Source: Hyaloraphidium curvatum SAG 235-1 (lineage: Eukaryota > Fungi > Monoblepharomycota). From it: a DNA stretch of 64,000 nt. The position numbers were made by a program, and so were the translations under genes. Under the pieces are notes generated by a model. It did no database searches and had not been told where the DNA came from. It was given only the letters and a program-made list of their open reading frames with translations. The stretch spans positions 186,001 to 250,000 of the forward strand of contig JAIVFI010000006.1 in the NCBI GenBank assembly GCA_025558095.1, written 5' to 3'. Position 1 is the first letter of the stretch. Each line of letters starts with the position of its first letter. Of this stretch, positions 21,436-39,394 are shown piece by piece.

Positions 21436-21859
21436 TTACGCTGCCGGCGGCATTTGCCCTTCGTTCGGAGGTCCCGCCACACGGTCTTCTTGATCGCGGT
21501 GCCGCTGACAAGTCGAAAATCCAACCTGGGCAGGATTTTTGCATTGCCTGTCTTCCTTGGTGGTACCCTGACATTTTGGTTTCTCGTCACGGTATGCTGC
21601 TTCAATCACTTCCGCATACGTTGCGGGTTCTTCATTTGTGGATGGTGTCGATCGTGAAGCCCGCTTGGCTTTCCTGGCCCGTGGTTTGGAAGGACCCGCA
21701 GTGGGAAGCAGCACTGCCACCGCATCCGGAACTGGCTGGGGAACATGCTCGGGTTCAGGCTCCTCCGCAGGCAGAGGCTGTTGATCGCGTAAGCCCTGAG
21801 ACTACAGAATCAACCGAATTGAGCTCACATGACTGTTGCAGACTCGCTCAAGCTCGGCA
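21436..21859 (-). pseudogene. 3' part of the glycosyltransferase gene split by the retrotransposon (intron 21778-21828; last exon with C-x9-C-x10-C-x2-H finger)
   Basis: Removing the element and one TSD copy restores ...TLAGQAAELERVCNSH. A GTGAGC...CAACAG 51-nt intron follows, then PLPAEEPEP...CQGTTKEDRQCKNPAQVGFSTCQRH...stop. Confidence 0.75.
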
Positions 21860-21863
21860 GCTT

Positions 21864-22339
21864 TGCGAAGGTACAGGACGTCTGACATTCGGACAAGGGT
21901 ATTTTCATTTTCGGTTCGGAGGCGTGGAGGCGTCGGTCCTCGCGATCGACTCGTGATCGACTCGCGATCGACTCGCGAGTGACTCGCGAGTCACTCGCGA
22001 GCGACTCGCGAGCGACTCGCAAGTGACTCGGCACAGCCACCCTCCTGGGATATATAAAGAGCGGGACATGTAACAGTACAATCTTGATCGCCAGTTGACT
22101 CTACGTGCTCTCCGTGTCGTTCGACCACCGTGCGGAACCCCGCCCGGCCGGATCCTCGTTCTGAGAGCCCTTGGGACGCACCCCGGGAGACATCCCGTAA
22201 CCTCTTTCCCCCGGCTACAGTCAAGTATCTTCAGCGCTGTTCGCTTATTCATATTCAGGGCCTATCCGACCCGAAGAGCCGAGCGGGATTCGCGCGCCGG
22301 GTTAGAGCTTCAGGCCCGGTTCCGACCCGGACCGTCGCA
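21864..22339 (+). repeat. 5' LTR (476 bp)
   Basis: Begins TGCGAAGGTAC and ends GGACCGTCGCA (imperfect terminal inverted repeat). No difference from the 3' LTR seen by eye; identical ORFs in the track at offset 10179. Confidence 0.97.
21939..22058 (+). promoter_or_regulatory. LTR U3 enhancer: ~8.5 x 11-bp CTCGCGA(G/T)NNA units followed by TATATAAA (22051-22058)
   Basis: ctcgcgatcga ctcgtgatcga ctcgcgatcga ctcgcgagtga ctcgcgagtca ctcgcgagcga ctcgcgagcga ctcgcaagtga ctcg; the TATA box lies ~20 bp downstream. Confidence 0.8.
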
Positions 22340-22340
22340 C

Positions 22341-22351
22341 TGGTCCGACCT
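22341..22351 (+). other. Primer-binding site TGGTCCGACCT (candidate tRNA-Tyr primer)
   Basis: Starts 1 nt after the LTR with TGG (complement of CCA). It is complementary to ...AGGTCGGA-CCA, the 3' end of CCGACCT-acceptor-stem tRNA-Tyr as known from plants. Confidence 0.65.
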
Positions 22352-22506
22352 CCGTGATCCTGCTCTCGGGTCTTCGACACCTCGTTCGACTTCAGTTTCG
22401 ACTTCGATAATCCAAAAACAACTTCGCCTGGCACCGGCGCTTGTCGACTGCCACTCTTTTCTGTCAACCGTATTCCGTCAACCAAGTTCATTCCCCTTCG
22501 CCAAAC

Positions 22507-24162
22507 ATGGACCCCGTTCAAGAAGCCGCCCCTCAGCAGGAGGTTCAGCAGCCTCAGGAAGCTAACGATTTGCAGAACAACCCGCAGGCCCAGGCGATTA
22601 TCCAAGCTGCGCAGGCCGCGATCCAGCAAGTCGGCGCCGCCGCCAACGACGTCGCCCAACTCGCCGCCCAGCAAGCCGCCCAGCAAGCCGTCGCCGATCA
22701 GCTTGCCGCTCAGCTCGTGGCGCAACAGACCGCTCAGCAGTTGCCAGCTGCCCAAGTTCAACAGCAAGCCGCCGCCGAGCAGCTTGCAGCGCAGCAGCTC
22801 CAGCAGCTCGCCGCACAGCAGCAGGGTCAGCGGAGCGAGCAAGCCCCGGCTGTCAACGCTGCCGCCGCTGGTCTCCAGCCGCAGCAGTTCGTCGACGCCG
22901 TACGGGCCATCGTTGGCGCTCAGCCGCCGAACGATGGAAGCACCGGCCTCCCCCAGGCGGATCGCCAGGGCGGAGCCGCCAAGCTCCCGGCTCAGCTGCT
23001 GCCTGCTTCTGTTCAGCCCTTCGATCCCGCTACGCAGGACCCGGAAGACTTCTTCCGCGACCTCACTACGGTTCTCACGGCGTTCGGCTCCATCAACAAC
23101 CTCGTCAAGGTCTTCCCGGTCTTCCTTGGGCCTCTGCCGCGCGCAATGTGGCACAACATCACGCCGCAGAACCGCCCTCCGGACTATCCCGCGACGGCCA
23201 CCTATCCTCCGGTGACCCAGAACGATGTGCTTGCCTGGCTACGCTACCACTTCGAGCCCCGCGACGCATCGATGCATTATCGCCGGCACTACAACACGAT
23301 TCAGATGACCAACGATGAGACCCTCGACGCCTTCGTTGCCCGCGTATCCCTGGCCGAGACGCGTTTCCTCTCGCACTGCGGCGATCAGCTTCCTACCAGG
23401 GAAGTGCAAGACAGCGTGTACGGCCAGAACCTGCTCTACGGACTGCGCCCGGAGCTACGCGGGAAGGCGCTGGAGCTCCTCGGGGATCACCTCATCAACC
23501 GCACTTCCGTCACCAAGGTCATCGAGAAGATGCGCACCGTCATGCAAGCATCGGGCCCTGCGCAGCCGCGCGACATCCGTTTCCTGGGCCAGAACTCGAT
23601 TTCGGAGATTCCGGCTCTGGTCGGCCAGCACTCGTCTTCGGGCTCCTCCAAGGCGACCGACAAGGCGACGACGGAAGTGCTGCTGGCTCATACGCAGGCT
23701 CTCACAAAGCTGCTGGAGCCTAAGGGAGAGCGCAGGCCCACCGGTGGACCGCCGGGGGAGTCTGCGTTCCGGCCTCCGCGCCGTTTCGTCCCCTTCCAGT
23801 CTCGTCGGAGCCAGCCGTTGCCGCCTTCGGGGCCGAACAGCGACCTCGTCGAGATCAAGGAGCTCATCACCAAGCTGCTGCCGTCGCCTCGCCATCAGGT
23901 TCAGGCCGCGGAGACCAGGTCGAACCCCCCCGCGAGGCCTCCTCCGATCGATCGGCCCCGCCAGCAGCAGGAGCGCCAGGATCGCCGGCCCTTCACCTCG
24001 GAGTACCGCGACCAGAAGCGCTTCCAGCCTCGCCACTGCCATCTCTGTGGCATGGATGGGCATGCTCAGGACGAGTGCTGGGAGTTGGAGAAGAATGCCA
24101 ACCGCCGCCCACTCAACTGGAAGTCTCGCCTCGGCAACACCCCTTCGATGCCAAAAAACTAG
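22507..24162 (+). CDS. gag: Gag (Q/A-rich N-terminus, capsid, CCHC nucleocapsid knuckle)
   Basis: ATG at 22507 (MDPVQEAAPQQ); capsid-like IQMTNDETLDAFVARV...LLYGLRPEL; knuckle CHLCGMDGHAQDEC. Confidence 0.9.
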   Translation: MDPVQEAAPQQEVQQPQEANDLQNNPQAQAIIQAAQAAIQQVGAAANDVAQLAAQQAAQQAVADQLAAQLVAQQTAQQLPAAQVQQQAAAEQLAAQQLQQLAAQQQGQRSEQAPAVNAAAAGLQPQQFVDAVRAIVGAQPPNDGSTGLPQADRQGGAAKLPAQLLPASVQPFDPATQDPEDFFRDLTTVLTAFGSINNLVKVFPVFLGPLPRAMWHNITPQNRPPDYPATATYPPVTQNDVLAWLRYHFEPRDASMHYRRHYNTIQMTNDETLDAFVARVSLAETRFLSHCGDQLPTREVQDSVYGQNLLYGLRPELRGKALELLGDHLINRTSVTKVIEKMRTVMQASGPAQPRDIRFLGQNSISEIPALVGQHSSSGSSKATDKATTEVLLAHTQALTKLLEPKGERRPTGGPPGESAFRPPRRFVPFQSRRSQPLPPSGPNSDLVEIKELITKLLPSPRHQVQAAETRSNPPARPPPIDRPRQQQERQDRRPFTSEYRDQKRFQPRHCHLCGMDGHAQDECWELEKNANRRPLNWKSRLGNTPSMPKN

Positions 24163-24200
24163 CTTTGCCCTCAGTGCCGCACGGCCATAGGGGGGCAGAG
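24153..24200 (+). other. -1 programmed ribosomal frameshift signal (A AAA AAC plus downstream stem-loop)
   Basis: Gag ends CCA AAA AAC TAG and pol is in the -1 frame. CTTTGCCCTC (24163-24172) can pair with GGGGGCAGAG (24191-24200) using two G-U pairs. Confidence 0.85.
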
Positions 24201-27200
24201 ATCCAAGCTCTTGAACCACATGTGGAACCTCTTCCTGGAACTTCCCCGCTGCCGGACGGCACGGACCCTTCATCTCCTGGCGGATCGCCGGAGTTGTCGG
24301 ATTCCGCGACCGATGAACCGACGGCGGAGGACCACGTTCATCATTGGCCCTTCGGGGGCACGGAGTACATCCTCTTCCTCGAGGCGGAGGCAGCTCGACA
24401 GGCCGCCGTTCGTCAGCAGCGGGAGGCGCTCATGCCGATCGACGAGACCCTGGCCCCGCCGCCGGCAGCGGATTCGGCGTCGCCCGGCTCGGTCGAGGTC
24501 GTGGGAAACGGTGAACCGGCGGCACAGGATGCGGACGCGGGATCAGCGGATGCACCTATGCACGAGGGCCCGACCGTCCGCGCCGTTCCCGGACCTTTCG
24601 AAAGGCCCCCTCCTCCTTCCGCCTACGCACGACCACCGCTGCCTGGCCCTCGGCCTCGCCCGCGGCCACCTGCTCCGGTCGCCCCTCCGCCGGATCGCTG
24701 GACGTGGACTTCGCAAGTGCAGTTCCACTATCAGGCGGCACGCGTTTCGGCATGGGTCAACGGCGTGAATACCCCCGCGGCCCTCGTCGACTCCGGTGCC
24801 TCAGTGGTGGCGGTTCGGTCGTCCTTCTTCTGCCGGATCCACCCGTCGCCACCGATCAAACCATGGACACTCGGCACCCTCAGCACGGCCGCGGCCGGCG
24901 GAACCATGTGGGTCCGCGGAGTTGCTAAGATGGACATCCTGGTCGGGAATCAACACTGCGTCATGGACGTCGCCATCATGGACGGTCTCATGGACGACGT
25001 GATCCTCGGCACCCCTTGGCTCTCCGCCCTACGCGTTCAGATGGACTGGGAGACGCCGGTCCTCTATTTCAAGGACGATCCGGAGGGGGTCGTCGTGCCA
25101 ATGCACATTGTTGCGCGACCGCTCTTCGGATCACACCTGGTCGCCCCGCTCCATTCAACCACCTCCATCACGGTCTACCCCAACGAGGACGTCTCGATCA
25201 CCGCTGAGCTGGCCCCGACGACTCCCTTGGCGACCGTCGTGGAGATGGACTTGACAGGGGTCATCGAGACGCCGAACACTTCGCCGTTCGATCGCCTCTT
25301 CATCATCCCGTCGGCGACGCCCGACAGAGACGGTCGGCTGCCGATTCTCATCCGCAACTACGGGACGACACCGGTCACGATCGGCCCGGGCACCCACCTC
25401 GGCCGCTTCCGCGTGCGGATTCCTGGATTTCTCGCTCCGGAACCGCCCACGTATCTGGCTCCCGCGCAGATCTCGATGCTGGAGCCCGAGCTGCCCCACA
25501 CCGAACCGGCCGAATCCACGCTCACGGTCGAGGAGACCATCGATCTGTTCGCGGTGCCCTCGCCGGGATCGATTGGACCACCTCAGCCTCCCGGCGTGGA
25601 GCCTCCTCCGGTCGAGGCTATCGAGCTCAAGATGGACCAAACGATCCTGAGCGAGGGGGACAAACCTCGTTTCCATAAGCTCTGCGACCGCTACCGGGAC
25701 GTGTTTGGTCCTTGGATCGGCAAGCTGCGCAACCATCGCTTCCGGATCGACACGGGCGACCTCAAGCCGATCCACCAGATGCCGTACCGGACCCCGTTCC
25801 GGCTTCGCGGGGAAATGGACAAGATCATCGACGACCTGCTCGTGCAGGGCGTAGTCGTCCCCTCGCGAAGCCCCTGGGCCACGCCCTGCATCATGGTGCC
25901 AAAAGGGCACGGCTCGGGCGAATGGCGCCTGGTGATCGATTACCGGAAGCTCAACGCCGCCACCAAGCGCGACGTCTACCCGATGAAGAACCCAAGCGAC
26001 ACTCTCGCTCTCCTCAGCGCGGCCAAGGTGTGGAGCGTTTGCGACATCCGCTCCGGCTTTTGGCACGTGGAGGTGGCCGACGAGGACAAGGAAAAGACGG
26101 CCTTCACGACGCACCGCGGTCTCTACCAGTGGGAGCGGATGGCCATGGGCTTTACCAACGCTCCTGCAACCTTTGCTCGGATCATGGACGAGCTCCTCGC
26201 CGGCCTCCAGTGGTACTGCTTGGTGGTCTTCATCGACGACATCATTATCTTCTCGCAGACGGTCGACGAGCACCTCGTGCACCTGGAGCTCCTCTTTGAC
26301 CGACTGCGCGAGGCCGGGATGACTCTGAAGCTGGCCAAATGCAAGTTCTTCCGCCGCGAGGTCAAATACCTCGGGCATTACGTCACCGCCGACGGCCTCA
26401 AGGTCGACCCCGAGAAGACCCGCGCGGTGGACCAGTTCCCCCGCCCAACGACCAAGAAGGAGCTCCAATCGTTTCTCGGCCTCTCCAACTACTATCGCCC
26501 CTTCATTGCCGGCTACGCCAACATTGCCAGCCCGCTCACCCGCCTGACGCAGGACGGCGTCTCGGTCTCTCGGGCCTGGGACGACGCATGCGAGGCCGCC
26601 TTCCGTATGCTAAAGGAACGGCTTACGTCGGCGCCCGTGCTCCGTCGCCCCGACTTTTCCAAGCGCTTCGTCTTGTTCACGGATGCCAGCGATATCGGCC
26701 TCGGCGCGGTGCTCAGCCAGCGGGACTCCGATGGCAAGGAGTACGTCATCGCCTACGCCAGCCGCGCTCTGCAGCCGAACGAGCGCAAGTGGGACACTCG
26801 GGAGCGCGAAGCCCTGGCCGTTGTTTGGGCATGCGAGCATTTCCGGGCGTATTTGATCGGGGACGAGTTTGAGGTGGTCACCGACCATAGCGCCCTCAAA
26901 TGGCTCTTGGAGACCTCCAAGCCGGGCCGCCTACAGCGCTGGATCCTCCGGCTCTCGGACTTCAGGTTCCAGATCATCCATCGCTCGGGCAAAGCGAACT
27001 CCAACGCCGACTTCCTGTCTCGTCAGCTCGTGGCGCCGTCGCCCGACGAGGACGTGCCTATGGGCGACCCCGAGGAAATCTTGGACATCCCTGCCTTTTG
27101 GCCCCCAAACCCTCCCGACCCCTTGCCTTTTTCTTCTTTTTCTGGGGGGGGACGGGCGCCCGGATTCCTCTCCGGGAGTGATCTCGGTCAGACTTCCCGT

Positions 27201-29210
27201 TCTTCGTCAACCCCAGTCACCGAGTCAGACTCGGGACGAGCTACTGCGGGTTCCTCAGTCAATTGTGAATCAATGGAGCGAGTGCTGTCTGGCACGGAGT
27301 TCCCGGCCACGGTTGCCGCAGTGGAGGGAACCCTGTGGAGCGATCCGGGGACCCTGCCCGAGGCTGCGGCACCGGAGACGCAGATCCTCCTGCCGATCCC
27401 AACGACGAACGCACAGGTCGACCCGGCAGACGTGCCTGAGCGAGACCTGGCGTTCCTTCATCCGGCACTGCTTGAGGTGCTACCCGATGTCGGGGGCATC
27501 AGTGCTATTGACCTTGCCGACGTCAGATCCCGGGATGCCCTGCGCAAAGTGCAAGAAGCCGACGTCGAGACCAGCGCGCTGATCCGCTTCGTGCGAGACG
27601 GGGAGCTCCCTCCCAACGTGAATCTGGCCAAATTCTGCAAGAAGTACGGCGAGCAGTACTTCCTCGCTACGGACGGCGTGCTCTGCCGGCGCGATGTACT
27701 CGCGACTGGTACCCGTCGTATCCCGGTCACCCAGCTCGTGATACCGCACGAGCTGAGGGAGGCCTACCTGCAACGTGCGCACGACGATCCCCTGAGCGGG
27801 CACGTCGGGCGACACCGGGCGTACAGCAATCTGCGGCGCCGCGTATATTGGGTCGGCATGGCGCACGACGTTCGCCGCTGGACGCGAGCCTGCCTTACAT
27901 GCATGACCCGGAAGATGCCTTCGGTATCGAACCAGGGCTTACTGAAATCGGTTCCTCTCACAGGTCCCAACGAGGACATCTACATCGACTACATCGGCGA
28001 GATCAATCCGGCCACGCCCCGCGGCAACAAGTACCTTCTCGTCGTCTACGATCCGTTCACTAAATGGGTCGCGGCGTATCCGACTCCGGACCTCTCTGGG
28101 CCGACGACGGCGAAGCTGCTCTATACGCGATGGATTCTCGAGCACGGTCTTCCGAAGCGGATTCACCACGACAACGCCTCGAACCTGGACAACCATTACA
28201 TGGAGTACCTGCTCAAGCTACTCGGCATCAACCGGGGCCTGGTCACGGTTGGGCATCCCAGGGCTTCCCTCGCGGAGCGCCCGAACCGGTGGATCATCGA
28301 CGCCCTGAGCGCAGCGGTCTCCAAGAACTACCAGACATGGGACGAGGACATCGTGGGGGTCATCTTTGCCTTCCGGACCTCCATCCACGCGACGACCGGC
28401 GAAACTCCGTTCTTTCTGATGCATGGTCGGGATGCTCGTATTCCGCTCGACCTACTTTACGACGAGACCGAGATTCGCGAGCCAGTGCACCTGCGGGCCA
28501 GCGACGAGGAGGACAAGAAGACAGAGGATGAGCGCCGGCGGACCTACGTCGTGGAGCTCGTGGCGCAGCTTCGTGCGGCCTACGACCTGGTGGCCGAGAA
28601 GATGGCCGCAGCGGCGGAGACTCGGAACGCCAAGGCCAACGCTACCCGGCTTCCGATTACCTTCCGCCCCGGCGACCTCGTGCTCATCTGGGGACCAGAA
28701 CGACCGCGCAAGGGCGAGCCGGGCAAGTTCGTCTCTCGTTATCTTGGGCCCTACCGCATCGAGGAGTCAGGCCACACCGAGCTCACCTGGAAGTGTAGAC
28801 ACGTCTACGAGACCGACCACGTCACCACTGTGCATGTGGACCGGCTGGCGCGCTACAAGCCTTGGGAGTCGGCCACCTTCAACGCGCGCTCGTGGAACGC
28901 ACGCGCCCCGGAGCTCGCCGCCGGTGAAGAGCTCGATCTCTCGGAACCGGTGAACGAGTTCGAAGAGGAAATCGAGGTCGAGAACGCGCTTGGGAACGAG
29001 CAGGAGTACACCGTCGAGGACATCGTCGGCCACGAGGGCCAGGGTCACGGACTCAAGTTCGAGGTCAAGTGGCGGGGCTTCGCTCGCACGACCAAGCTCC
29101 CTCTGGACATGTTGCACGGCGCCATAGGGATCGTCCGCGCCTATGCCGATCGCGTTGGTCTCCAGCTCCCGACGGGTCTCCCCAGGCGCATGCGGACTCG
29201 GCGTCGCTAG
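24153..29210 (+). CDS. pol: Pol polyprotein: protease, dUTPase-like remnant, reverse transcriptase, RNase H, integrase, chromodomain
   Basis: ALVDSGAS (PR); WRLVIDYRKLN, DIRSGFWHV, FIDDIIIFS (RT); TDASDIGLGAVL, EREALAV, TDHSAL, NADFLSR (RH); HDDPLSGH...CLTC, IDYIG, HDNASN, AERPNR, LGPYRI (IN); EYTVEDIV...FEVKWRGF (chromo). No internal stops. Confidence 0.97.
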   Translation, partial: KKLALPSVPHGHRGAEIQALEPHVEPLPGTSPLPDGTDPSSPGGSPELSDSATDEPTAEDHVHHWPFGGTEYILFLEAEAARQAAVRQQREALMPIDETLAPPPAADSASPGSVEVVGNGEPAAQDADAGSADAPMHEGPTVRAVPGPFERPPPPSAYARPPLPGPRPRPRPPAPVAPPPDRWTWTSQVQFHYQAARVSAWVNGVNTPAALVDSGASVVAVRSSFFCRIHPSPPIKPWTLGTLSTAAAGGTMWVRGVAKMDILVGNQHCVMDVAIMDGLMDDVILGTPWLSALRVQMDWETPVLYFKDDPEGVVVPMHIVARPLFGSHLVAPLHSTTSITVYPNEDVSITAELAPTTPLATVVEMDLTGVIETPNTSPFDRLFIIPSATPDRDGRLPILIRNYGTTPVTIGPGTHLGRFRVRIPGFLAPEPPTYLAPAQISMLEPELPHTEPAESTLTVEETIDLFAVPSPGSIGPPQPPGVEPPPVEAIELKMDQTILSEGDKPRFHKLCDRYRDVFGPWIGKLRNHRFRIDTGDLKPIHQMPYRTPFRLRGEMDKIIDDLLVQGVVVPSRSPWATPCIMVPKGHGSGEWRLVIDYRKLNAATKRDVYPMKNPSDTLALLSAAKVWSVCDIRSGFWHVEVADEDKEKTAFTTHRGLYQWERMAMGFTNAPATFARIMDELLAGLQWYCLVVFIDDIIIFSQTVDEHLVHLELLFDRLREAGMTLKLAKCKFFRREVKYLGHYVTADGLKVDPEKTRAVDQFPRPTTKKELQSFLGLSNYYRPFIAGYANIASPLTRLTQDGVSVSRAWDDACEAAFRMLKERLTSAPVLRRPDFSKRFVLFTDASDIGLGAVLSQRDSDGKEYVIAYASRALQPNERKWDTREREALAVVWACEHFRAYLIGDEFEVVTDHSALKWLLETSKPGRLQRWILRLSDFRFQIIHRSGKANSNADFLSRQLVAPSPDEDVPMGDPEEILDIPAFWPPNPPDPLPFSSFSGGGRAPGFLSGSDLGQTSRSSSTPVTESDSGRATAGSSVNCESMERVLSGTEFPATVAAVEGTLWSDPGTLPEAAAPETQILLPIPTTNAQVDPADVPERDLAFLHPALLEVLPDVGGISAIDLADVRSRDALRKVQEADVETSALIRFVRDGELPPNVNLAKFCKKYGEQYFLATDGVLCRRDVLATGTRRIPVTQLVIPHELREAYLQRAHDDPLSGHVGRHRAYSNLRRRVYWVGMAHDVRRWTRACLTCMTRKMPSVSNQGLLKSVPLTGPNEDIYIDYIGEINPATPRGNKYLLVVYDPFTKWVAAYPTPDLSGPTTAKLLYTRWILEHGLPKRIHHDNASNLDNHYMEYLLKLLGINRGLVTVGHPRASLAERPNRWIIDALSAAVSKNYQTWDEDIVGVIFAFRTSIHATTGETPFFLMHGRDARIPLDLLYDETEIREPVHLRASDEEDKKTEDERRRTYVVELVAQLRAAYDLVAEKMAAAAETRNAKANATRLPITFRPGDLVLIWGPERPRKGEPGKFVSRYLGPYRIEESGHTELTWKCRHVYETDHVTTVHVDRLARYKPWESATFNARSWNARAPELAAGEELDLSEPVNEFEEEIEVENALGNEQEYTVEDIVGHEGQGHGLKFEVKWRGFARTTKLPLDMLHGAIGIVRAYADRVGLQLPTGLPRRMRTRRR
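27131..27156 (+). other. Candidate central polypurine tract (T-rich box + G8)
   Basis: TTCTTCTTTTTCTGGGGGGGGACGGG resembles the 3' PPT context CTTCTTTTGGGTGGGGGCG and lies ~45 bp from the element midpoint (27191). Confidence 0.55.
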
Positions 29211-29280
29211 TAACACCAACGACGTCTATCCGGTCACAGCACTACCATCTCTGTGCTCCGATCCCCGGCTTTTCACTGAC

Positions 29281-30266
29281 TCAAACCCGACGTACTACCT
29301 CGAGCCTATCCTCGACCCCCTCGAACGCCAACTTGTGATACCCGGACTGAAAATGCGTGTTCAGATTGCCCAGGAGGCCCTTAGCCTTGTGCTTTACCAG
29401 ATGGCACCACGGGAACGAGCATACCGCCACTTCGCCCTTGGTGGGGCTCCGGTACAGTTCGCCGGCGTACGTTCCGGCAATCTTCCATCGGAGGAAGGAG
29501 CCTGCCGGCACGGCATCAGGGACCTTCTTCGTCACCCGTTCCGCCTTCAAGCCCCAGACCGGCGACGACTTCTTCATCTGGCACATTCAGTGACGATCAG
29601 CGCTTGTGGGGCGTACTCCCGTCGAGCCGTTCACCTGCGCAATCTGCTCCCGGGCCTCCCCGCGCTGCACCACATGCCCCTCGTCTTTACCTGAAGTTGC
29701 CGTTTGGGCCGTCTGGAAGGCGCTCCCTTGTTCAGTGGCGGCCTCGAAGTCGCCTAAGTGGTCCAGCTCCCAAGAGGGCGCATGAAGCGTGACTGACAGC
29801 ACGGGGACTTCGTCGGCCGCCTCGAGCTCCTCCCTCGAGTCCGCCGCCGACTCGCCCTCGCCGACGGAAGGCGCACCCTTCGACGACATCGCCGGCAGGA
29901 AGACGCCGGAGGTCCGGGTTGCGGCCGCGGCCGCGATCGGGTCGTTGCCTCTGGCCCCGCCAGCCTCGCGCAGCTTGGCGGTCCCGCCGGCCTCGCGCAG
30001 CTCGGCGACGAGCCGACGGAGCACTCGGACCTCGACAACGACGTTCCCAGCCTCTTCGGCCAGCGGCAACATCCCGCGCATGGCGGCCAGACGCACCAGT
30101 TGCAGGAAGCAGTCGACCACGTCGTCCTCCTGGCGCGGCGCTGAGCTCCCGTTCGAGGACCACGCCGCTACGCTCTTACCTTGGTGCACAGCAGGACGTC
30201 GAAGGTCGGCAACCGAACCTCGAACCACGAACTCGGCGGGACGACGTTCGGCAGCTCCGCACTCAT
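29281..30266 (-). CDS. Antisense accessory gene of the retrotransposon, spliced (exons 30266-30180, 30129-29635, 29577-29281; ~292 aa), C-terminal BED-like zinc finger
   Basis: Two phase-0 introns of host-typical size (50 nt GTAAGA...CCAG; 57 nt GTGAAC...CTGAT...CCAG, containing the in-frame stop) give one continuous frame. It ends KKSSPVW...VAVCSFPWC...LGNLNTHFQSGYH. Confidence 0.7.
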
Positions 30267-30406
30267 GACAGGCGCGGAGATCCCCCCAGCTCTTCTGGAC
30301 CCTACGTCGCGATCCCCCGCGAGCGCTTTCGTCGACGCAATGGCGTACGGCCCTCGCTCGCGCCCCGTCCCCCGTGGCGGGGACTGGTGACCCGGTGTGC
30401 GGGCGA

Positions 30407-30566
30407 ACTCGCGGTCGACTCGACTCGCAGTTGACTCGCGGTTGACTCGCGGTTGGCTCGCGGTTGACTCGCAAGTGACTCGCGAGTCACTCGCGAGTCG
30501 CTCGCAAGTCACTCGCGAGCGACTTGCGATGCACTCGCGAGTTGCCTGCGCTTCGCACCATATAAG
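30407..30566. promoter_or_regulatory. Internal (probably bidirectional) promoter: ~12 x 11-bp ACTCGCG(A/G)(G/T)TN array + TATAA (30561-30565)
   Basis: Same unit and similar array-to-TATA spacing (~18-20 bp) as the LTR U3. It lies between the divergent ATGs at 30266 (-) and 30635 (+). Confidence 0.75.
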
Positions 30567-30634
30567 CGGCGGACCATAGGAGGCCGCGGCCGCGGACTAC
30601 GCACCCAACGTCGACCTCGCCGCTACCGTCTCCC

Positions 30635-31900
30635 ATGGCGACCCCCACGACTGCCGGCCACAACCTGCGGCCCCGCCGGCCGCATGTGGCCACGGCGCCG
30701 CCGCCGGCGACTGCGCCCGTCGCTGCGTTGCCTGGCGTCGTACCCCCGGACTATCGGTCGGCGCTTGCCTCCCTCTCGACCCGGCTGGACGACCTCCGGG
30801 CCGACCTCGACGTCAGACACTCCCAGACGACGGCCCACTTGCACAAGGTCGAGCAGGCCGCCTTCTCCGCGGTCATGCCCATCCGCGCAGCCCTCGACGC
30901 ACTCCACCCGGTGCTCAACACCCTCGTCAATGTCGGCAACCTGGAGCAGCACGCTCTTGACCGCGTAACGGCGACGCTCGAGCAGCAAGAGGCCCGCCTG
31001 GACGCCCAGATCCGCCAGCAGCGTGACGAGCTCCAGGTGGTCCTCAGTGGCCGCCACCGCGAACTTGAGTTCGCCGTCACCGCCTTGCGCCGGACCGACG
31101 ACGCTCGTCTCGGTGCCATCGAGACGCAGCTCGACCGGCTTGCGTTGGTGCTCGAGGCTCAACGTCAGAACTTCAACGGCATTCTCCTGGTGGACGAAGC
31201 TACCATCGAGGAGTTGAGGGAGTTCGGCTCTTCCCTCGCCGGGCTGGTTGCTCAGACCGGGACCAACCTCGAAACCACCATCGAGACCGTCGTCGAGACC
31301 AATCTCGCCCGTCACAACAATGGCCCCATGGCGGAGTTTGCGGCCGACCTCAAGAGCGTCCTGGCGGCCCATCTGCAGCGATTTGGGTCGGAGCAGCACA
31401 AGCAGCTCATGCTTTCAGCTCAAGACGACACCACGCTCCTCACGGCCGGCCTGAACGCGCAGCGCGAGCACTTCACCAAGACCGCCGACGAGCAACGGGC
31501 CCTCCTGCGTCGCTTCCTCGGCAATCAAGTGGCTCCCCTGGCGGGGCAAACGACGCCCGCCGTGGTCACCTCCACGCCGGTCGGCCGCGTCAAGGACGAG
31601 GACCTCGTCACCTCCGACGATGAGGCTGGGGATATGCAACCTCCAGCTCCTCGCCCCGAGAGCGTGTCCAGCAGCGACGCCTCCTCCATCGTCTCGCAGG
31701 ACGACGGCCTCTTGGCCGCCCTGTACGACGACATCCCGGCCGCTCCCTACAAGTCGACCATGCCCCCGGTCTACACCCCCTCGGCCGCGGACGGCTCAGC
31801 CGTGCATGCCGCCTTCGCTCTCGGCTTTACCCGCCGGCTCCGCGCCCCGCCGCCGAGCGACGACGAGGCGGACGCCGACGTCGACTTTGAGGACGCCTAA
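30635..31900 (+). CDS. ORF3 of the retrotransposon: 421-aa soluble coiled-coil protein with acidic tail, unknown function
   Basis: Uninterrupted ORF with GC3-rich codons, ATG 70 bp after TATA, long heptad helices, no signal peptide or TM segment. Confidence 0.8.
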   Translation: MATPTTAGHNLRPRRPHVATAPPPATAPVAALPGVVPPDYRSALASLSTRLDDLRADLDVRHSQTTAHLHKVEQAAFSAVMPIRAALDALHPVLNTLVNVGNLEQHALDRVTATLEQQEARLDAQIRQQRDELQVVLSGRHRELEFAVTALRRTDDARLGAIETQLDRLALVLEAQRQNFNGILLVDEATIEELREFGSSLAGLVAQTGTNLETTIETVVETNLARHNNGPMAEFAADLKSVLAAHLQRFGSEQHKQLMLSAQDDTTLLTAGLNAQREHFTKTADEQRALLRRFLGNQVAPLAGQTTPAVVTSTPVGRVKDEDLVTSDDEAGDMQPPAPRPESVSSSDASSIVSQDDGLLAALYDDIPAAPYKSTMPPVYTPSAADGSAVHAAFALGFTRRLRAPPPSDDEADADVDFEDA

Positions 31901-32030
31901 GCCACCCTTCGGCCCTACACTCTCCAACATCTGTTGTCTCCACCTCGGCCTTCAACATCTTCTACTGCAAGCATGACGTCACTCCGCGGAGGATCTTCGA
32001 TTTCGTGGCGCCGAGGGCGGCGCCTTCTTT

Positions 32031-32042
32031 TGGGTGGGGGCG
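32031..32042 (+). other. 3' polypurine tract
   Basis: TTTTGGGTGGGGG-CG immediately before the 3' LTR TG. Confidence 0.8.
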
Positions 32043-32518
32043 TGCGAAGGTACAGGACGTCTGACATTCGGACAAGGGTATTTTCATTTTCGGTTCGGAG
32101 GCGTGGAGGCGTCGGTCCTCGCGATCGACTCGTGATCGACTCGCGATCGACTCGCGAGTGACTCGCGAGTCACTCGCGAGCGACTCGCGAGCGACTCGCA
32201 AGTGACTCGGCACAGCCACCCTCCTGGGATATATAAAGAGCGGGACATGTAACAGTACAATCTTGATCGCCAGTTGACTCTACGTGCTCTCCGTGTCGTT
32301 CGACCACCGTGCGGAACCCCGCCCGGCCGGATCCTCGTTCTGAGAGCCCTTGGGACGCACCCCGGGAGACATCCCGTAACCTCTTTCCCCCGGCTACAGT
32401 CAAGTATCTTCAGCGCTGTTCGCTTATTCATATTCAGGGCCTATCCGACCCGAAGAGCCGAGCGGGATTCGCGCGCCGGGTTAGAGCTTCAGGCCCGGTT
32501 CCGACCCGGACCGTCGCA
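32043..32518 (+). repeat. 3' LTR (476 bp)
   Basis: Direct repeat of 21864-22339, followed by the TSD GCTT. Confidence 0.97.
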
Positions 32519-34257
32519 GCTTGTCCTGCGAGCGTGCTCGATGTTATGTTGAGTTTGCTCCAAACGCGCTCCAGGACCTTCGAATCATGCAGCCTCAATG
32601 ATTCAAACAGTACGTCCCCATCAGCACCGGTTTCCCGGGCCCGCAGCAGCAGCTCCTTGAAAGCCGAGAAGTCCGCGTTGAACCTCTTGTCAAGCTGTTC
32701 CTCTTGGATCTGGTTCTTCGCCTTTGGAACAAGCACAACCAGCTTTTCGAGCAATCTGATCTGCGCTTCGGAAGCGGCATCAATGAATGTCCGATGCTTC
32801 TCCCGTCTGGAAGCCGAAGCACTCCTCAATGCCTTCCCACAGGCGTCAATCTCAAGCAGGAGTGCCAGGCACTTCTCCACAGGTTTAAGAAGCTTGTTCT
32901 CAGCGATTCCAACGGCGCGAAGCTTTATGTACCATAGATAAAGGTCTCGCAATGCGCTCTCCTCCCACTGCTGACGAGGACATACACGCTGCCCATCAAA
33001 ACGCCAGCTCAAAAGCCAGCTTCGCCAATCCTCTAGCGCAGGAAACGGCTCCTTTGCGCGAGCACCGCCTGTGGGGTCATGAAGACGCACAGGAGAGTTC
33101 ACTTTGGCAACTAAACCCCCTGCAGCACCCAGTCGAAAAAGGAAGTCGATGTCCTCGGCACACGTTAGGCCAGGAATGAAGTCCTTGCCACGTGTTAGTC
33201 CCGGACGCAGCAGAAACGCCTTGTAGACGTTGCTTGGCACCTTACGATTGCCTATCCATTCATGACCGGCTGGATGGTTGAAAGCAACTGGCGTCGTGCC
33301 CGGAGCCTTTTGCGATGTCTTGCAGAATCCGATCACAGCAGGCCGTACTCTGACGTTCGTCTCCCGCAGCCGGGCTGCGGCCTCGTCTGCAGTGGCCACC
33401 GCCTGTGCAACAGCATCCACAGCTGAGACCGGTTTCGCAAGCTTCTGCCAGGCACTTCCAGCGAGCTTCAAACCCTTCGACTCGTCCTTGTCGGGAATTC
33501 GGGAGAATGTGCAGTTGTCGTCCAGCATCCAATACTCTCTAGAAATTGTTGAGCACTGGGGTCGCTCGCATCTGAAGCACACCTACTTGAGCAGAACACC
33601 CCTTGGCCCGGAAGGAAGAATACCGTTCACCATGGCCCGGTGCAGTACGAACCGAGCATAGGCAATGCCGCGTCCATCGTGAGGTAGAACAGCGAAGGTC
33701 AAGTTGGGATACGCAGCCGCGTATTCGGCGTATTGAAGAGGCTCGACGACGACCACAGCGATCTGGTCCCGTGCAGTGACTCTAGCGTCCTTGCTGAGCT
33801 CCCGGAGCAAGGGCGCTTGATCGCTCCCAGCACGGCCCGCGCTCGGCACAAAAATTGGGATCCGCTCTGGACTCCTACGAGATCTTATCAAATCGAGAAG
33901 TTCCGCTGCTGCAGCGCCTTTGAATTCAACGATTTCAACCACGGCTTCATGAAGAGCATATGGAAGATTGGATATCGCGACATGGAACACGTCCTGATGT
34001 ACTGTGACCGGGAGTGGCGTGGGTGACAGGGCACCGGAACGCGCTGGATGTTCGCGGGGCTTGCTCGTGGAGTAGTAGCGCTGTTGAAGCGTCGTAGTGG
34101 TGCTGACCATCGAGCGCGTGCGACGCGCCACCGGCTGTTCGGGAGTGGGAGGCCGTGGCGTTTCGGCAGCGGGCACTCTAAGGCCACCGTCCGCGGCCAC
34201 GCCCGGGGGCGCCGCTGCGGCACGCTGGACATCAGACTTCTTCGGCTTCGGAGGCAT
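32519..34257 (-). pseudogene. 5' part of a GREB1-like / TET-JBP-associated (J-base glucosyltransferase-like) glycosyltransferase gene, interrupted by the retrotransposon; intron 33539-33586
   Basis: IPIFVPSAGRA, VVVVEPLQYAEYAAAYP..AVLPHDGRGIAYARF, EYWMLDDN, CAEDIDFLFRL follow the GT-A motif order of this family. A 48-nt GTAGGT...TCTAG intron joins ORFs 33583 and 32434 in frame. Confidence 0.7.
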
Positions 34258-34492
34258 CGTCGGCGTCCCGTCGGAATGGAGGTGCAAAATCTTTGGTAGG
34301 TCGTCGGAGGATGTTCCAAGTGATTGCGGCGAGAGTTCAGGGTCCTGCCGAATCATGCCGCCGACAGTAGGGTCAGTCACGGACCATGGGTGTGCGCATC
34401 ATCATCATCATGTTGAAGACAAAGAAGACCAAGCTATGCAACAGTATCGCGCAACGGAATCGCGGAATCAAAGATCGTGCCCCCGGCACCCC

Positions 34493-37400
34493 TCAAGCCT
34501 CTGCCTCGTCGTTCAGATCCCTCCAGTCCGTATCCTCCACCCCCATCGCTCTCGCCCGTGCCTCGAGCTCCTCCATCTCCTCGTCCTCCTCCTCGTCCTC
34601 CCTCCTCTCCTCGCGGCAGTCGCACTTCGCCGCCTCGAGCATCCGCGCGCCGTGCACTCCGAGCAGCTCCAGGCACCGCGTGGCGGCCTCGCGCCGGGAA
34701 AACTTCTTACTGCGCGCCTTGGCGTGCGCGAGCTCGGCGTCGTGGTGCATCACGCGGCAGATGAAGTGCGTGGGGCTGCTGTCGAGGGTGCGCTCCTCGT
34801 CGACGATGTGCTCGTAACTGGGAAGCAGGATGCATTGAGAGGCCGAGTCCCTCGGTCAAGCGCACCATCGGACGACCCACGTGAACTTGAGCCCCCTGCA
34901 GCGCCTCGCCAGAAGGACCTGCACGACAAGCTGCACCGGGTGCCGCGGCGGCCTCCTCGGATCGATGTTCTTCTCCACCAACGGCAGCATGACCCTCTTG
35001 AACACCCTCTCCACCGCGCGCAGGCTGAACCCCGAGTCCAGGTACACCGCCCCCAGCATCGACTCGACGATGTCGGCCAGCGCCTTGGGCGCCTGCAGCG
35101 ACATCCACCTCAGCTTCGGGTCGGGGGCCAGGTGGCCGTACTGCGGGTCCCTCTTTTCCGGCAGCGGCTCGCGGCGCTCCAGCTGCTCCAGGTCGTCGCA
35201 GTAGTCCCCCACGGCGTGGAGCAGCGCGCCCGAGCCGTGGTCCAGGTGCACGTGCAGGCCGAGGCGGACGCAGAGCATGGCCAGGAAGTTGTTGCAGATG
35301 GCAACCTCGCGGAGAGCGGTGAGCGTGCCGGGGGTGGCGTGGGAAAAGTGCTCGAAGAGGAGCGAGGTGACCATGGTGCTGAGGATGGCGTCGCCGAGGA
35401 ACCTGAGGGGATCGGGTCAAGTCAGCTCAGTGTCCATGGCCTCGACCGATAGCGGACGCACTCGAGGCGCTCGTAGCTCCGGACCATGGTGTCGATGGCG
35501 CTCTCGTGCGTGAGCGCGGAGAGGCAGAGGAGCTTGGACCTGAAGGTGTACCCCAGGATGCTCTCGACCAACGGCACGCGCGAGAGCTTCGGGTGCTGGT
35601 CCGGCGAGTCGAGGTCGTACGGCGCGTCGAGCCCGCACTGCTGCAGCACAAACTCCTCGCTCAGATCCGTGGGCAGGGTCGCCTCGAGGTCGAAGACCCG
35701 GGCGAGGAACCTGTCCGCTCCGGCCTCGTCGCGCAGGTAACATGCTCCGACGACGGCCTCGACAGTGTCGGCCAGCGTCTTGATGGACAGGTTGACCTGC
35801 GTGTCCGCGTCCGGCTTGAGCTTGGGCGGTCTCCACTCCTTCCACTTCAGCGAGCACTTGCCCGCGGCGATCGACGCGGGCCACTGCGGATCCATCTGGA
35901 TGATCTTGCGCCCGAGGAAGGTGTTGGAGACGAGGAAGTTGCGCCTCCGCGTCAGCGATCCCTGCGCGTAGCCCCTGTCCTTGACGAACGTCCGCGTGGT
36001 GGTGAAGAACTTGATGTGGGCGTCGCCGAGGAACTCGAGCCGCTCGAGGTTGGACTCCTTGAGGCCCAGGAGGGAGCTCTTGGCCAGCGTCATGGCGGGA
36101 ACGAGCTCCTCGGGGCACTCGCGGAAGAAGAGCCCGTTTCGGTCGTTGAGCTCCCTCGCGAGCAGGTTGAGCTTGAGGAACTCGATGACCGACGGCACGA
36201 AGAAGGCGAAATCGACCAGTTCCTTCTCGAGCGGGTTGACCTTGAGGTACTGCGGGAAGACATAACGGTCCGACGAACGCTTGGCGCCCGCCATGCCCGG
36301 CTGCGGGAACGGACCGAAGGGCCTCGACGCGCGGTCGGGCTGCAGGTAGTCCAGCTTCCTTGGCAGCCGCTGGGCCAGGTAGACCGACTGGTTCGGGTCG
36401 ATCCTCTCGAGCGGGATGTTGTGCGACTTCATGTAGGCCGAGCAGACGCGCAGGTCGGGCTTGAACGGATCCAGCATCATGTGCGGCGTCAGGCGCTCGC
36501 AGCGGTACCGGTACAGGTACTTTTGCGGGTGCGTGCCGACGGTGTCCTCCAGGATGACGTCGCGGAGGTTCCTCAGGGCCTCGTACTCCATGTCCGACCT
36601 GCCCACGAGCTCCGAGACCAGGATAGGGTTGTTGGCGTATCCGAGGTGCATGCGCATCCTTTCGACGTCGATCCCGTCCCGGTGGTCGCTGGCAATGCAC
36701 ACGAGCAGGATGGCCGGGTCCTCCTGTGCGCTGTACACCGGCCTCGCGGGAACGGCCTCCCCATCGACCTCCATCGGGTCGCTCTGGGCTACGGGCCTCC
36801 GCTTGAGCACCGTGTTCCACACCAGCGCGCTCCACTGCATGAACATGTCGAGCTTCTCGGACGAGATCTCCTCGCTCCGCACGGTCTTGACGGAAAAGGG
36901 CTCCGTGTTCTCGCCGTCGACGAAGAGCGGGATTTTGACCTCGCGAGGGAACGCGTACCGGGTCAGCAAGCCGATGGTCTGCGCAGAGCCCTTCCTCTCG
37001 ATCACGTTCAGGTAGGTCATGTTCGTGCTCCCCGGAACGTGCGACCACGGAGTCGCCTGGGCCCAAAGCTTCGGCACGGCCGGGGCGATGAACCTCTCCT
37101 CTTCCTCCAGCTCCAAGAGGTCCTTGGGATCGGGATCCGGCTTGGGCGGCAGCAGGTTCTCGTCCAGATAGCCCAGATCCCGCAGCACCCTCAGGAGCGA
37201 CATGGCTGCCGCAGCCTTGGCGATGCTCCTGCTCCGGCGCTTGGCGCTGAACCACTGCCTCAAGGCCTCCGGTAGGTTGGTCGACGGAATCCTGACCGAG
37301 CACTCGTGCTCTTGTGCTTCGACAGGCTCGGTTCCGAAGCGGAAGAGCGGCCGAGGACTGTAGTAACGGTCGCCTCCCAAGCGCGCGCAAAAGAGCTCCA

Positions 37401-39394
37401 GACGTGCTACAGCCAGCGACAGCGGCAGGTACGCGCCCGTCTCGGGATTGTGCAAGACATCCGCGGGGTCGTGGAGGATCTGCATGTCGTCCTCGAGGAA
37501 TGGCGTGCCTTCTGCGAGCGACTTGTTGAACACGATCTCCTTGTTCTTCAGGTCGCTCAGCTGCTTGATGTCGTTCTCGTTCGCGTTCTCGGCAAACAAG
37601 AGGTACTGGGACCTCAGATGGCGAGCTCTGCCCCTGGACTGTATGTACGAGATCAGTGTCTTGGGCAGGTCGAATCTGGCGCGGGAGAGGACGGTAAGAA
37701 GACGAGCAGAGAAGCAAGAAGCAACCCGACGAACCGGATGACGAGCTGGCAGGGTTTGATGTCCAATCCTTCCTCAGCGACCGCAGTAGCAACGAGCGTC
37801 GTGATTTCTCCCTTTCGGAACTGTGGAACAATAAGCGGGCGGCAGGCCAAGATTCGCGCACATGCTTGCCTTCCGTATCATCTCGTTCTGAACCCTGTAG
37901 TCCATCGCTTGGCCGCGCGTGTTCTCCTCGAACGCACCGGCCGACCCGTGCCCGACAATGACCCCGACGGAGCTCCCAATCTCCCTTCTCAAGATTGCGG
38001 CAAGCGCCCACGCCGTGGCCCTTCGCTCCACGAAGATGATGCCGCAGTACTCGGGCTGCTGACGCAGCTCGACGAGCTGTTCCATGAGCTTCTGAACCTT
38101 CGGCGAATGTCGCAGGAAGTGAAGCGGCGTGGGCTCCCTCGCCGTCGGGCGAACCGAGTTGATCAGCTCATCCAGGAAAGGCTCGCTGGTTCGATTCCGG
38201 GCATAGTACCTCCTGATCCAGTTCTGGAGCTCCGGGAGCGACTCGCGGAGGTAGATGTCGGCAGCACGCGTCCCGAGGGCGACCATGATCTCGCGTGCAT
38301 CGGCAACAAGCTTGAGGAAGACCTTGGGCGGGTCCTCGACATTCGCGGCGGCGAAGCGCTGGCTGGCCAGATCCGCAGCCGCAATGAGCCGATCAAACAG
38401 AGGGAACGCGACCGACTCGTCGTATTTGTCGAACCAGACTAAGCGTTCCTTCGCGCGGGCCACGAAAGCTGCTATTTCGTTCTCGTCGCAGGTGATGATC
38501 TGGCAGTTGATGGCGCTCTGCAGCTGGCTGTGTTTCGTGTGATGTGCGGATAAGCATGCTGCGTCCAGGTTCGATAGTGTGCACTCACGTCAACCCGACT
38601 TGAATGTCCTGCTTGCCGACGATAGGGCTTGCGGTCATTCCGAAAACCTTCGGCCTCTCCTCGAGGGGCGTGGTGCGGTAATATGTGTCGAAGATCACGT
38701 TGTACGGATGCTTGCGCTTCGCGTGGTGGCATTCGTCCAGGATCAGAAGGGCGATGTCCTGCAAATGCGCGTCAAGAGTTGCCAACGAGTGACTCAGGCC
38801 CGGAACGTACCTTCATGCGAACAAAGCCGCAACTGATGATGTTGAGGAAGATGGCTGCGGTCATGCAGTGCACGTTGGTCTCCTCGAGGTTCGACTTCCA
38901 CCGCGGCCCGTTCCACGAGTCCACGTCCATCTCGCCGCAGTAGCTCTTCACGTGGGTATCGCAGTGGCGCCGGAGCACGTCGCTTTGCTGGAAGACCAGC
39001 GGAACCAGGTTGACGAGGAAGAAGACGAGCTTCGGTGCCGAAGGTTTGCTGCGAGCAATGTCGAGTGTGTGCTTCACCAGCAAACCTGCAGCGAACCAAG
39101 AGTTAGCTGAGTTGTCGGCATTATGGCGCGACGCGCGACCGTACAGCTGATCAACGTCTTGCCTGCTCCGGTAGGCAGCACCGCGACGACGTTGCTTGTT
39201 TTCGCAACCTCAAACACGTTGAGCTGGTACGCCCGAGGGTGAAGCCGAGCCTCTTCCTTGGCAATCACGAGCTTGGGTTGAGCAGGGGGCGCCGTATTCT
39301 CCTTGCTATCGACGTGCATGACCGCAGGAGCCGCGCTTTCCTTGCCGTCGACCTCCATCGGAGCCACGTCCGCGAACCTCTCGCCCAGGGCCAT
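34493..39394 (-). CDS. DCL: Dicer-like endoribonuclease (helicase, Dicer dimerisation domain, PAZ, 2x RNase III, dsRBD), multi-exon
   Basis: PRAYQ...[90 protein letters not shown], terminal dsRBD helix. Confidence 0.95.

Follow-up and report, generated by a model that had tools for sequence, protein, structure and literature searches.

What does the interrupted gene on the minus strand of this 64,000-nucleotide stretch of DNA (the whole stretch analyzed, hereafter "the window") encode, and on what would its product act? An earlier sequence-only reading had proposed a glycosyltransferase fused to a CCCH finger and split by an insertion. The feature is real and its family-level assignment is correct: judged from its sequence, the encoded protein is a soluble GT-A glycosyltransferase of the TAGT (TET/JBP-associated glycosyltransferase) superfamily.

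The gene starts at an ATG at 34257. Exon 1 (33587–34257, minus strand, like all parts of the gene) begins with a low-complexity basic and proline-rich N-terminus, MPPKPKK, just as the earlier reading had it, and then encodes an N-terminal module and the first half of the TAGT domain (PIFVPSAGR, VVEP..Y, RGIAYAR). After a probable 48-nt intron 1 (33539–33586, GTAGGT...TTCTAG), which has GT-AG ends and encloses an in-frame TAG at 33585–33583, exon 2 (32519–33538 up to the insertion) supplies the second half (WMLDDN, YKAFL.R, DFIPGL.CAEDIDF) and an alpha-helical domain that was recognized from homologue alignments and from the model of a homologue. Beyond the insertion, the remainder of exon 2 (21829–21863) is followed by a candidate intron 2 (21778–21828), assigned from sequence, which starts GTGAGC, contains a TAG at 21804–21802 and would measure 27, 33 or 51 nt depending on which in-frame acceptor is used. 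The last exon (21436–21777) encodes a proline-rich linker, a basic patch (KPRARKAKR) and a DUF5763-like C-x9-C-x10-C-x2-H zinc finger (21499–21573), and ends in a TAA stop. By coordinate arithmetic the uninterrupted product would comprise ∼687 to 695 residues, depending on the intron 2 acceptor.

The motif series was found in the order originally described, with PIFVPSAGR at 33858–33832, VVVVEPLQY at 33756–33730, RGIAYAR at 33672–33652, YWMLDDN at 33534–33514 and then DFIPGLTCAEDIDF at 33183–33142. Active-site residues are present (R at 33834, DDN at 33522–33514, and EDIDF), the third residue of the central motif being Asn and not the Asp of DDD. A conserved, subfamily-specific N-terminal module at 34101–33958 (TT.Q.RY, then F.V.ISNLPY) comes out in the model, with good confidence, as two strands plus a helix and does not occur in phage TAGTs. 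The reported lack of a transmembrane or signal stretch is borne out by a top 19-residue Kyte-Doolittle mean of 1.3, and the finger string at 21573–21499 is unique among ∼128,000 six-frame positions of the whole window. Note that the public protein record of the locus (P0001, 364 aa) extends from within the DDN motif into the LTR, and the gene is therefore mis-modelled in databases.

For family assignment, exons were searched separately, each against profiles. The TAGT profile PF20691 scored 37.3 bits over the genomic locus (gathering cut-off 27.5) and matched exon 1 alone with an E of 9e-6; an unbroken homologue scored 40.9 to 43.6 bits, and no other family was matched. Two PHROG families, 4519 and 842, match the gene, the second of which (beta-glucosyl-HMC-alpha-glucosyltransferase) matches both halves, and a language-model search of the Atlas retrieved TAGT clusters. 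Structure comparisons used a model of homologue P0002 (residues 135–500, pLDDT 77.6) as a stand-in for the window protein; the full-length P0002 model reached a pLDDT of 37. The top viral fold match was the TAGT of Ralstonia phage phiRSL1 (B2ZYD7; E 5.6e-11), and the top Atlas structure row was likewise a TAGT (TM 0.74 by target). General GT2/GT-A enzymes in the PDB matched at E ∼1e-5, far behind the phage TAGTs, so that the best matches are not ordinary GT2 glycan enzymes and the TAGT assignment holds by profile, language-model and structure searches alike. PDB sequence searches gave no match, word-index searches run exon by exon gave the gene's own protein as their sole match, and pattern scans of viral contigs and of bacterial and archaeal genomes, which are insensitive, gave no relative. 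The window locus is the single PF20691 match in the 31.93-Mb, 55-contig genome; the intact paralogues that had been thought worth seeking were thus not found.

Whether the gene was sound before it was interrupted depends on the TAG at 33585, a stop that the earlier reading does not mention. We consider it probable from the sequence that 33586–33539 is an intron: its removal leaves 15 residues in the window protein opposite 16 in P0002, and the homologue on contig L006 is interrupted, two codons from the corresponding place, by a GT-AG intron of 53 nt that shifts the frame. Were the TAG instead a nonsense mutation, the gene would already be decaying and the locus would be a relic with no present function, which we regard as improbable. 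Such decay would agree with the transcript evidence, in which one probable RNA run yields a 1,525-nt contig of the gene (depth 6.8) that retains the 48-nt intron and is unspliced over the TAG, whereas the contig of the neighboring Dicer-like gene from the same run is spliced and has a depth of 73. Plain DNA carry-over is an unlikely source of the unspliced contig, because the adjoining multi-copy LTR is mostly uncovered in that run, and RNA contigs drop minority forms, so that the unspliced contig may hide spliced ones. A relic would also fit the tolerated insertion, the GC3 of 0.59–0.60 (0.72–0.95 for most host frames in the window) and the mild loss of CpG with gain of TpG/CpA in exon 2 and the last exon. 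However, both in-frame stops lie within GT-AG intron-like stretches, all residues that are invariant in the subfamily are kept, and no frameshift has accumulated over ∼2 kb. GC3 is below that of the neighboring genes at all three finger-bearing loci (window, L005 and L006), and since the copies on L005 and L006 are unbroken, the low value suggests low expression rather than decay peculiar to the window copy.

The interruption itself is a chromodomain-bearing Ty3/gypsy LTR retrotransposon of 10,655 bp (21864–32518, plus strand) inserted in exon 2. Its parts, all on the plus strand, include gag (22441–24162), pol (24075–29210) and an extra open reading frame (30635–31900), with Pfam matches to reverse transcriptase, RNase H, integrase, protease and chromo domains. 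The 3' LTR (32043–32518) and its 5' counterpart, each of 476 bp, are 100% identical, and the element is flanked by a 4-bp target duplication (GCTT at 21860–21863 and 32519–32522), across which the gene halves are in frame with each other. A search with 259 bp of the LTR found at least 33 identical copies in the genome, and 4-bp duplications also flank six other paired elements; we therefore attribute the insertion to a very recent burst of the element.

Several further observations were made on the element. The burst of the family looks to be still ongoing, and tandem and nested copies occur on contigs C2 and C11. LTR length variants step by 11 bp owing to an internal 11-bp repeat, which recurs at 30391–30568. 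The extra open reading frame (421 aa) is coiled-coil-like, occupies the env position and has no clear Pfam match (PF04513, E 0.0014). Summed contig depth over 32300–32518 in runs X2/X3 exceeds single-copy depth several-hundredfold and is above what the assembled copies would lead one to expect, a depth value that is not a copy number.

The insertion point lies beyond the catalytic and helical domains and before the finger, leaving the catalytic domain whole. The present frame continues for 28 codons into the LTR to a stop at 32436–32434, giving a product of ∼590 residues provided that intron 1 is removed by splicing; the last ∼125 residues, finger included, are lost through the retrotransposon. 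Because it falls after the catalytic domain, the insertion is a truncation and not necessarily a knockout. The LTR-gene junction is spanned by a contig from a DNA run. Diploidy has been reported in the host phylum (PMC9457484).

A full HMMER search of 1.8 billion representatives with the first half of exon 2 returned seven matches, five of them true relatives and none a kinetoplastid protein; P0007 (Macrostomum) was rejected as spurious. The closest relative, P0002, is an 821-aa protein encoded by one intronless open frame on contig L005, and consists of the N-terminal module, the TAGT domain, the helical domain, a basic patch and two C-terminal CCCH fingers. Exon 1 is 39% identical to it over 180 aa (E 5e-30), residues 1–167 of the exon 2 piece match it at E 3e-35, and the last exon aligns to its C-terminus (pairwise E 2e-5), with its second finger and the residues upstream matching those of the window. 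P0003, on L006, likewise ends in one such finger. The proposed fusion of enzyme and finger is therefore real independent of the earlier reconstruction across the insertion, as both homologues are unbroken and finger-ended. P0004, P0005, P0014 and P0015, most of which stem from marine metagenomes, have the signature YK.FLIR...DF.PGL.CAEDIDF and lack the finger. P0002, P0003, P0006 and these four share that signature with a following ..R, the N-terminal module and a W...L..WR helix; they are 30–52% identical to the window protein and have gene neighbors different from those in the window. Asn at the third DDD position is a trait of the whole subfamily. A small tree of the exon 2 region places the window protein as sister to P0002 (support 96/97) and splits eight eukaryote-type rows weakly (72/84) from four phage TAGTs.

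The homologue contigs look eukaryotic from their sequence, given their introns and their RING, FG-repeat, Tim17-like and ankyrin-MYND neighbors; we take the Tim17-like gene on L006 to point to a fungal contig. By these comparisons the window protein and its homologues make up a small eukaryotic subfamily of TAGTs that has no name as yet and whose domain plan is new. A search for published fungal TAGTs found none; TAGTs were reportedly defined by Iyer et al. in 2013, whose set may include related eukaryotic members. Two other genes were seen on such contigs. One, at L218:8034–9203 on a eukaryote-like contig of marine origin, is TAGT-like but distant (PF20691 E 0.007) and lies 6 kb from that contig's first TAGT gene; the other encodes a repeated DUF7028/MBD-like protein at L007:43–813, ∼7 kb from a marine TAGT homologue.

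The finger had been likened to the WRC type. Its CX9CX10CX2H spacing is indeed equal, but the Trp-Arg before the second Cys is absent (the residues are Arg-Gln-Cys) and no PF08879 (WRC) match was reported at E 1 in the window pieces. The Trp and Arg of the WRC finger are required for DNA binding (bioRxiv 10.1101/2025.01.03.631214). Judged by its sequence, the finger more closely resembles DUF5763 (PF19067), which it matches below cut-off (E 0.037). The PHROG search gave weak matches to the N-terminal end of an HNH nuclease family of phages, a result that would fit nucleic-acid binding and proves nothing. The finger and the basic patch upstream of it are conserved in the finger-bearing homologues, and the basic patches suggest a nuclear location.

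If the substrate were a modified pyrimidine, partner enzymes would be expected in the genome. There are 11 matches to PF00145 at or above cut-off (best E 6e-23; DNA and tRNA types pooled), corresponding to about seven C5 cytosine methyltransferase loci. These loci, many for a fungus, are at C12:523184, C12:548189, C4:762134, C4:158154, C1:1431206, C31:108515 and C11:217407. For the TET/JBP partner that had been suggested, a local profile was built from 80 viral TET/JBP proteins. Two related phage TET proteins of this set, used as queries, each match a single place in the host genome, on the minus strand at G000:C27:317618–318058, weakly (E 0.013 each) and across the HxD core, within a 547-codon open frame. 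The suggestion thus gains one weak TET/JBP-like frame, but scans of the genome with PF12851 and PF20515 gave no candidate, and two genome-wide DNA-pattern hunts returned unrelated genes only. Linkage of a TET/JBP gene to the TAGT gene was seen neither in the window nor at 12 homologue loci with the 80-sequence profile. Nearby, a Dicer-like gene (34441–38600) on the same strand ends ∼200 to 250 bp upstream of the TAGT gene; its introns at 34818–34880 and ∼35401–35459 are confirmed by an RNA contig. A Dicer-TAGT "defence locus" was rejected, as no homologue locus shares any neighbor with the window.

The reading we prefer, while giving it somewhat less than an even chance, is that of an enzyme that is directed to nucleic acid and puts sugars on hydroxymethyl-pyrimidines of DNA. 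The donor would be a nucleotide sugar, the DDN motif would bind a divalent metal, EDIDF would sit at the acceptor site, and the basic linker and finger would bring the enzyme to chromatin. Hydroxymethyl-pyrimidines, either 5hmC (after a C5-methyltransferase) or 5hmU, would be made by an unlinked TET/JBP enzyme and capped by the TAGT enzyme, most plausibly on repeats, to give a base-J-like mark, as JGT does for base J. The truncated product in this assembly would keep its catalytic core and lose its targeting. In favor of a DNA acceptor are the exclusive matches to the TAGT family, phage TAGTs as nearest folds, the retained motif series, the lack of a membrane anchor, the conserved finger and basic patch with WRC-equal spacing and a weak phage HNH match, and the presence in the genome of several C5-methyltransferase loci with one weak TET/JBP-like frame. 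The R...DDD...EDY/F (DD(D/N)...ED) series typifies DNA-acting phage GT-A enzymes and JGT (bioRxiv 10.1101/2023.12.21.572611). Against it stand the weakness of that TET match beside blank PF12851 and PF20515 scans, the lack of a linked TET/JBP gene in the window or at the 12 homologue loci, marine homologues without the finger, low-level unspliced RNA and the survival of the strain despite the truncation. A further point against it comes from viruses, where ∼65% of GT-containing contigs have no base-modification neighbor (bioRxiv 10.1101/2023.12.21.572611).

Also against a DNA acceptor is GREB1, the only characterized non-kinetoplastid eukaryotic TAGT, which is said to glycosylate protein (PMC7968844). 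The main rival, unlikely in our estimate, is accordingly an intracellular protein O-glycosyltransferase in the manner of GREB1, whose finger and helical domain would select chromatin- or RNA-bound proteins. A TET gene linked at no locus, marine members that lack the finger and a scattered eukaryotic distribution resembling that of GREB1-like proteins all suit a protein substrate; the nearest structural neighbors, however, are phage TAGTs, and GREB1's own activity in vitro is weak and donor-unspecific (PMC7968844). Nor do the diagnostic parts of GREB1 appear. GREB1_C (PF20267) had no match at E 1 in the window pieces or homologues (a genome scan was blank, as was its positive control), and the permuted inactive SF2 helicase and N-terminal Zn domain had no Pfam match, there being no room for them in a protein of 690 to 821 residues. 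"GREB1-like", as the protein had been called, is thus too specific, and by sequence the subfamily falls outside the GREB1 clade. The non-animal GREB1-like lineages given in PMC7968844 do not include fungi.

Other acceptors, namely RNA bases, an already glycosylated base or invading viral DNA in place of the host chromosome, are improbable to a slightly greater degree than decay of the gene. Because PHROG 842 matches both halves, addition of a second sugar comes to mind: the T2/T6 beta-glucosyl-HMC-alpha-glucosyltransferase attaches a second glucose (PMC13216743), but no enzyme that would add the first sugar to DNA came to light in this analysis. The Dicer-like gene directly upstream would also suit such other acceptors, but its adjacency is kept at no homologue locus. 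CCCH fingers are frequently RNA-binding.

Returning to a DNA acceptor, its widest form can be put forward only as a doubtful proposal: that early-branching fungi and some marine protists use a finger-targeted TAGT and an unlinked TET/JBP enzyme to write a sugar-modified pyrimidine in nuclear DNA, base-J-like and outside euglenozoans, and that a transposon burst here cut the finger off the only copy. Among eukaryotes, glycosylated DNA bases (base J) have been described only in kinetoplastids and close relatives (PMC11065753), and fungal TET/JBP transposons lack a glycosyltransferase (2025 survey, PMC12730594); should the enzyme act on DNA, its product would be the first DNA base known to carry a sugar in a fungus. 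A protein acceptor would instead place a second eukaryotic TAGT lineage beside GREB1 in the service of intracellular glycosylation. With C5 methyltransferases, a TET-like gene and a TAGT together in a fungus that is in culture, hypermodification of fungal DNA can be tested directly, and P0002, the unbroken homologue, lends itself to an assay.

Among known systems, phage TAGTs (phiRSL1 B2ZYD7 and the T2/T6 alpha-glucosyltransferase) give the best profile and fold matches and share with the window protein the GT-A fold and the motif series PIF.P.K/A.GR, VVEP..Y, GI.Y.R, W.LDD and ED.DF. In contrast to them, the window gene has introns, an extra N-terminal module, a helical domain and a C-terminal finger, reads DDN for DDD, lies in no operon with TET and methyltransferase genes, and encodes a protein 20–26% identical to theirs. 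JGT, compared by description, is similar in being eukaryotic, soluble and of the same superfamily, and in that the partner oxidase would be unlinked; fusion to a finger is, to our knowledge, not a feature of JGT. GREB1 and GREB1L resemble the window protein in having a eukaryotic TAGT domain without a membrane anchor, but GREB1 has 1949 residues as compared with ∼690, and the window protein carries a C-terminal finger and neither GREB1_C nor a permuted SF2 helicase.
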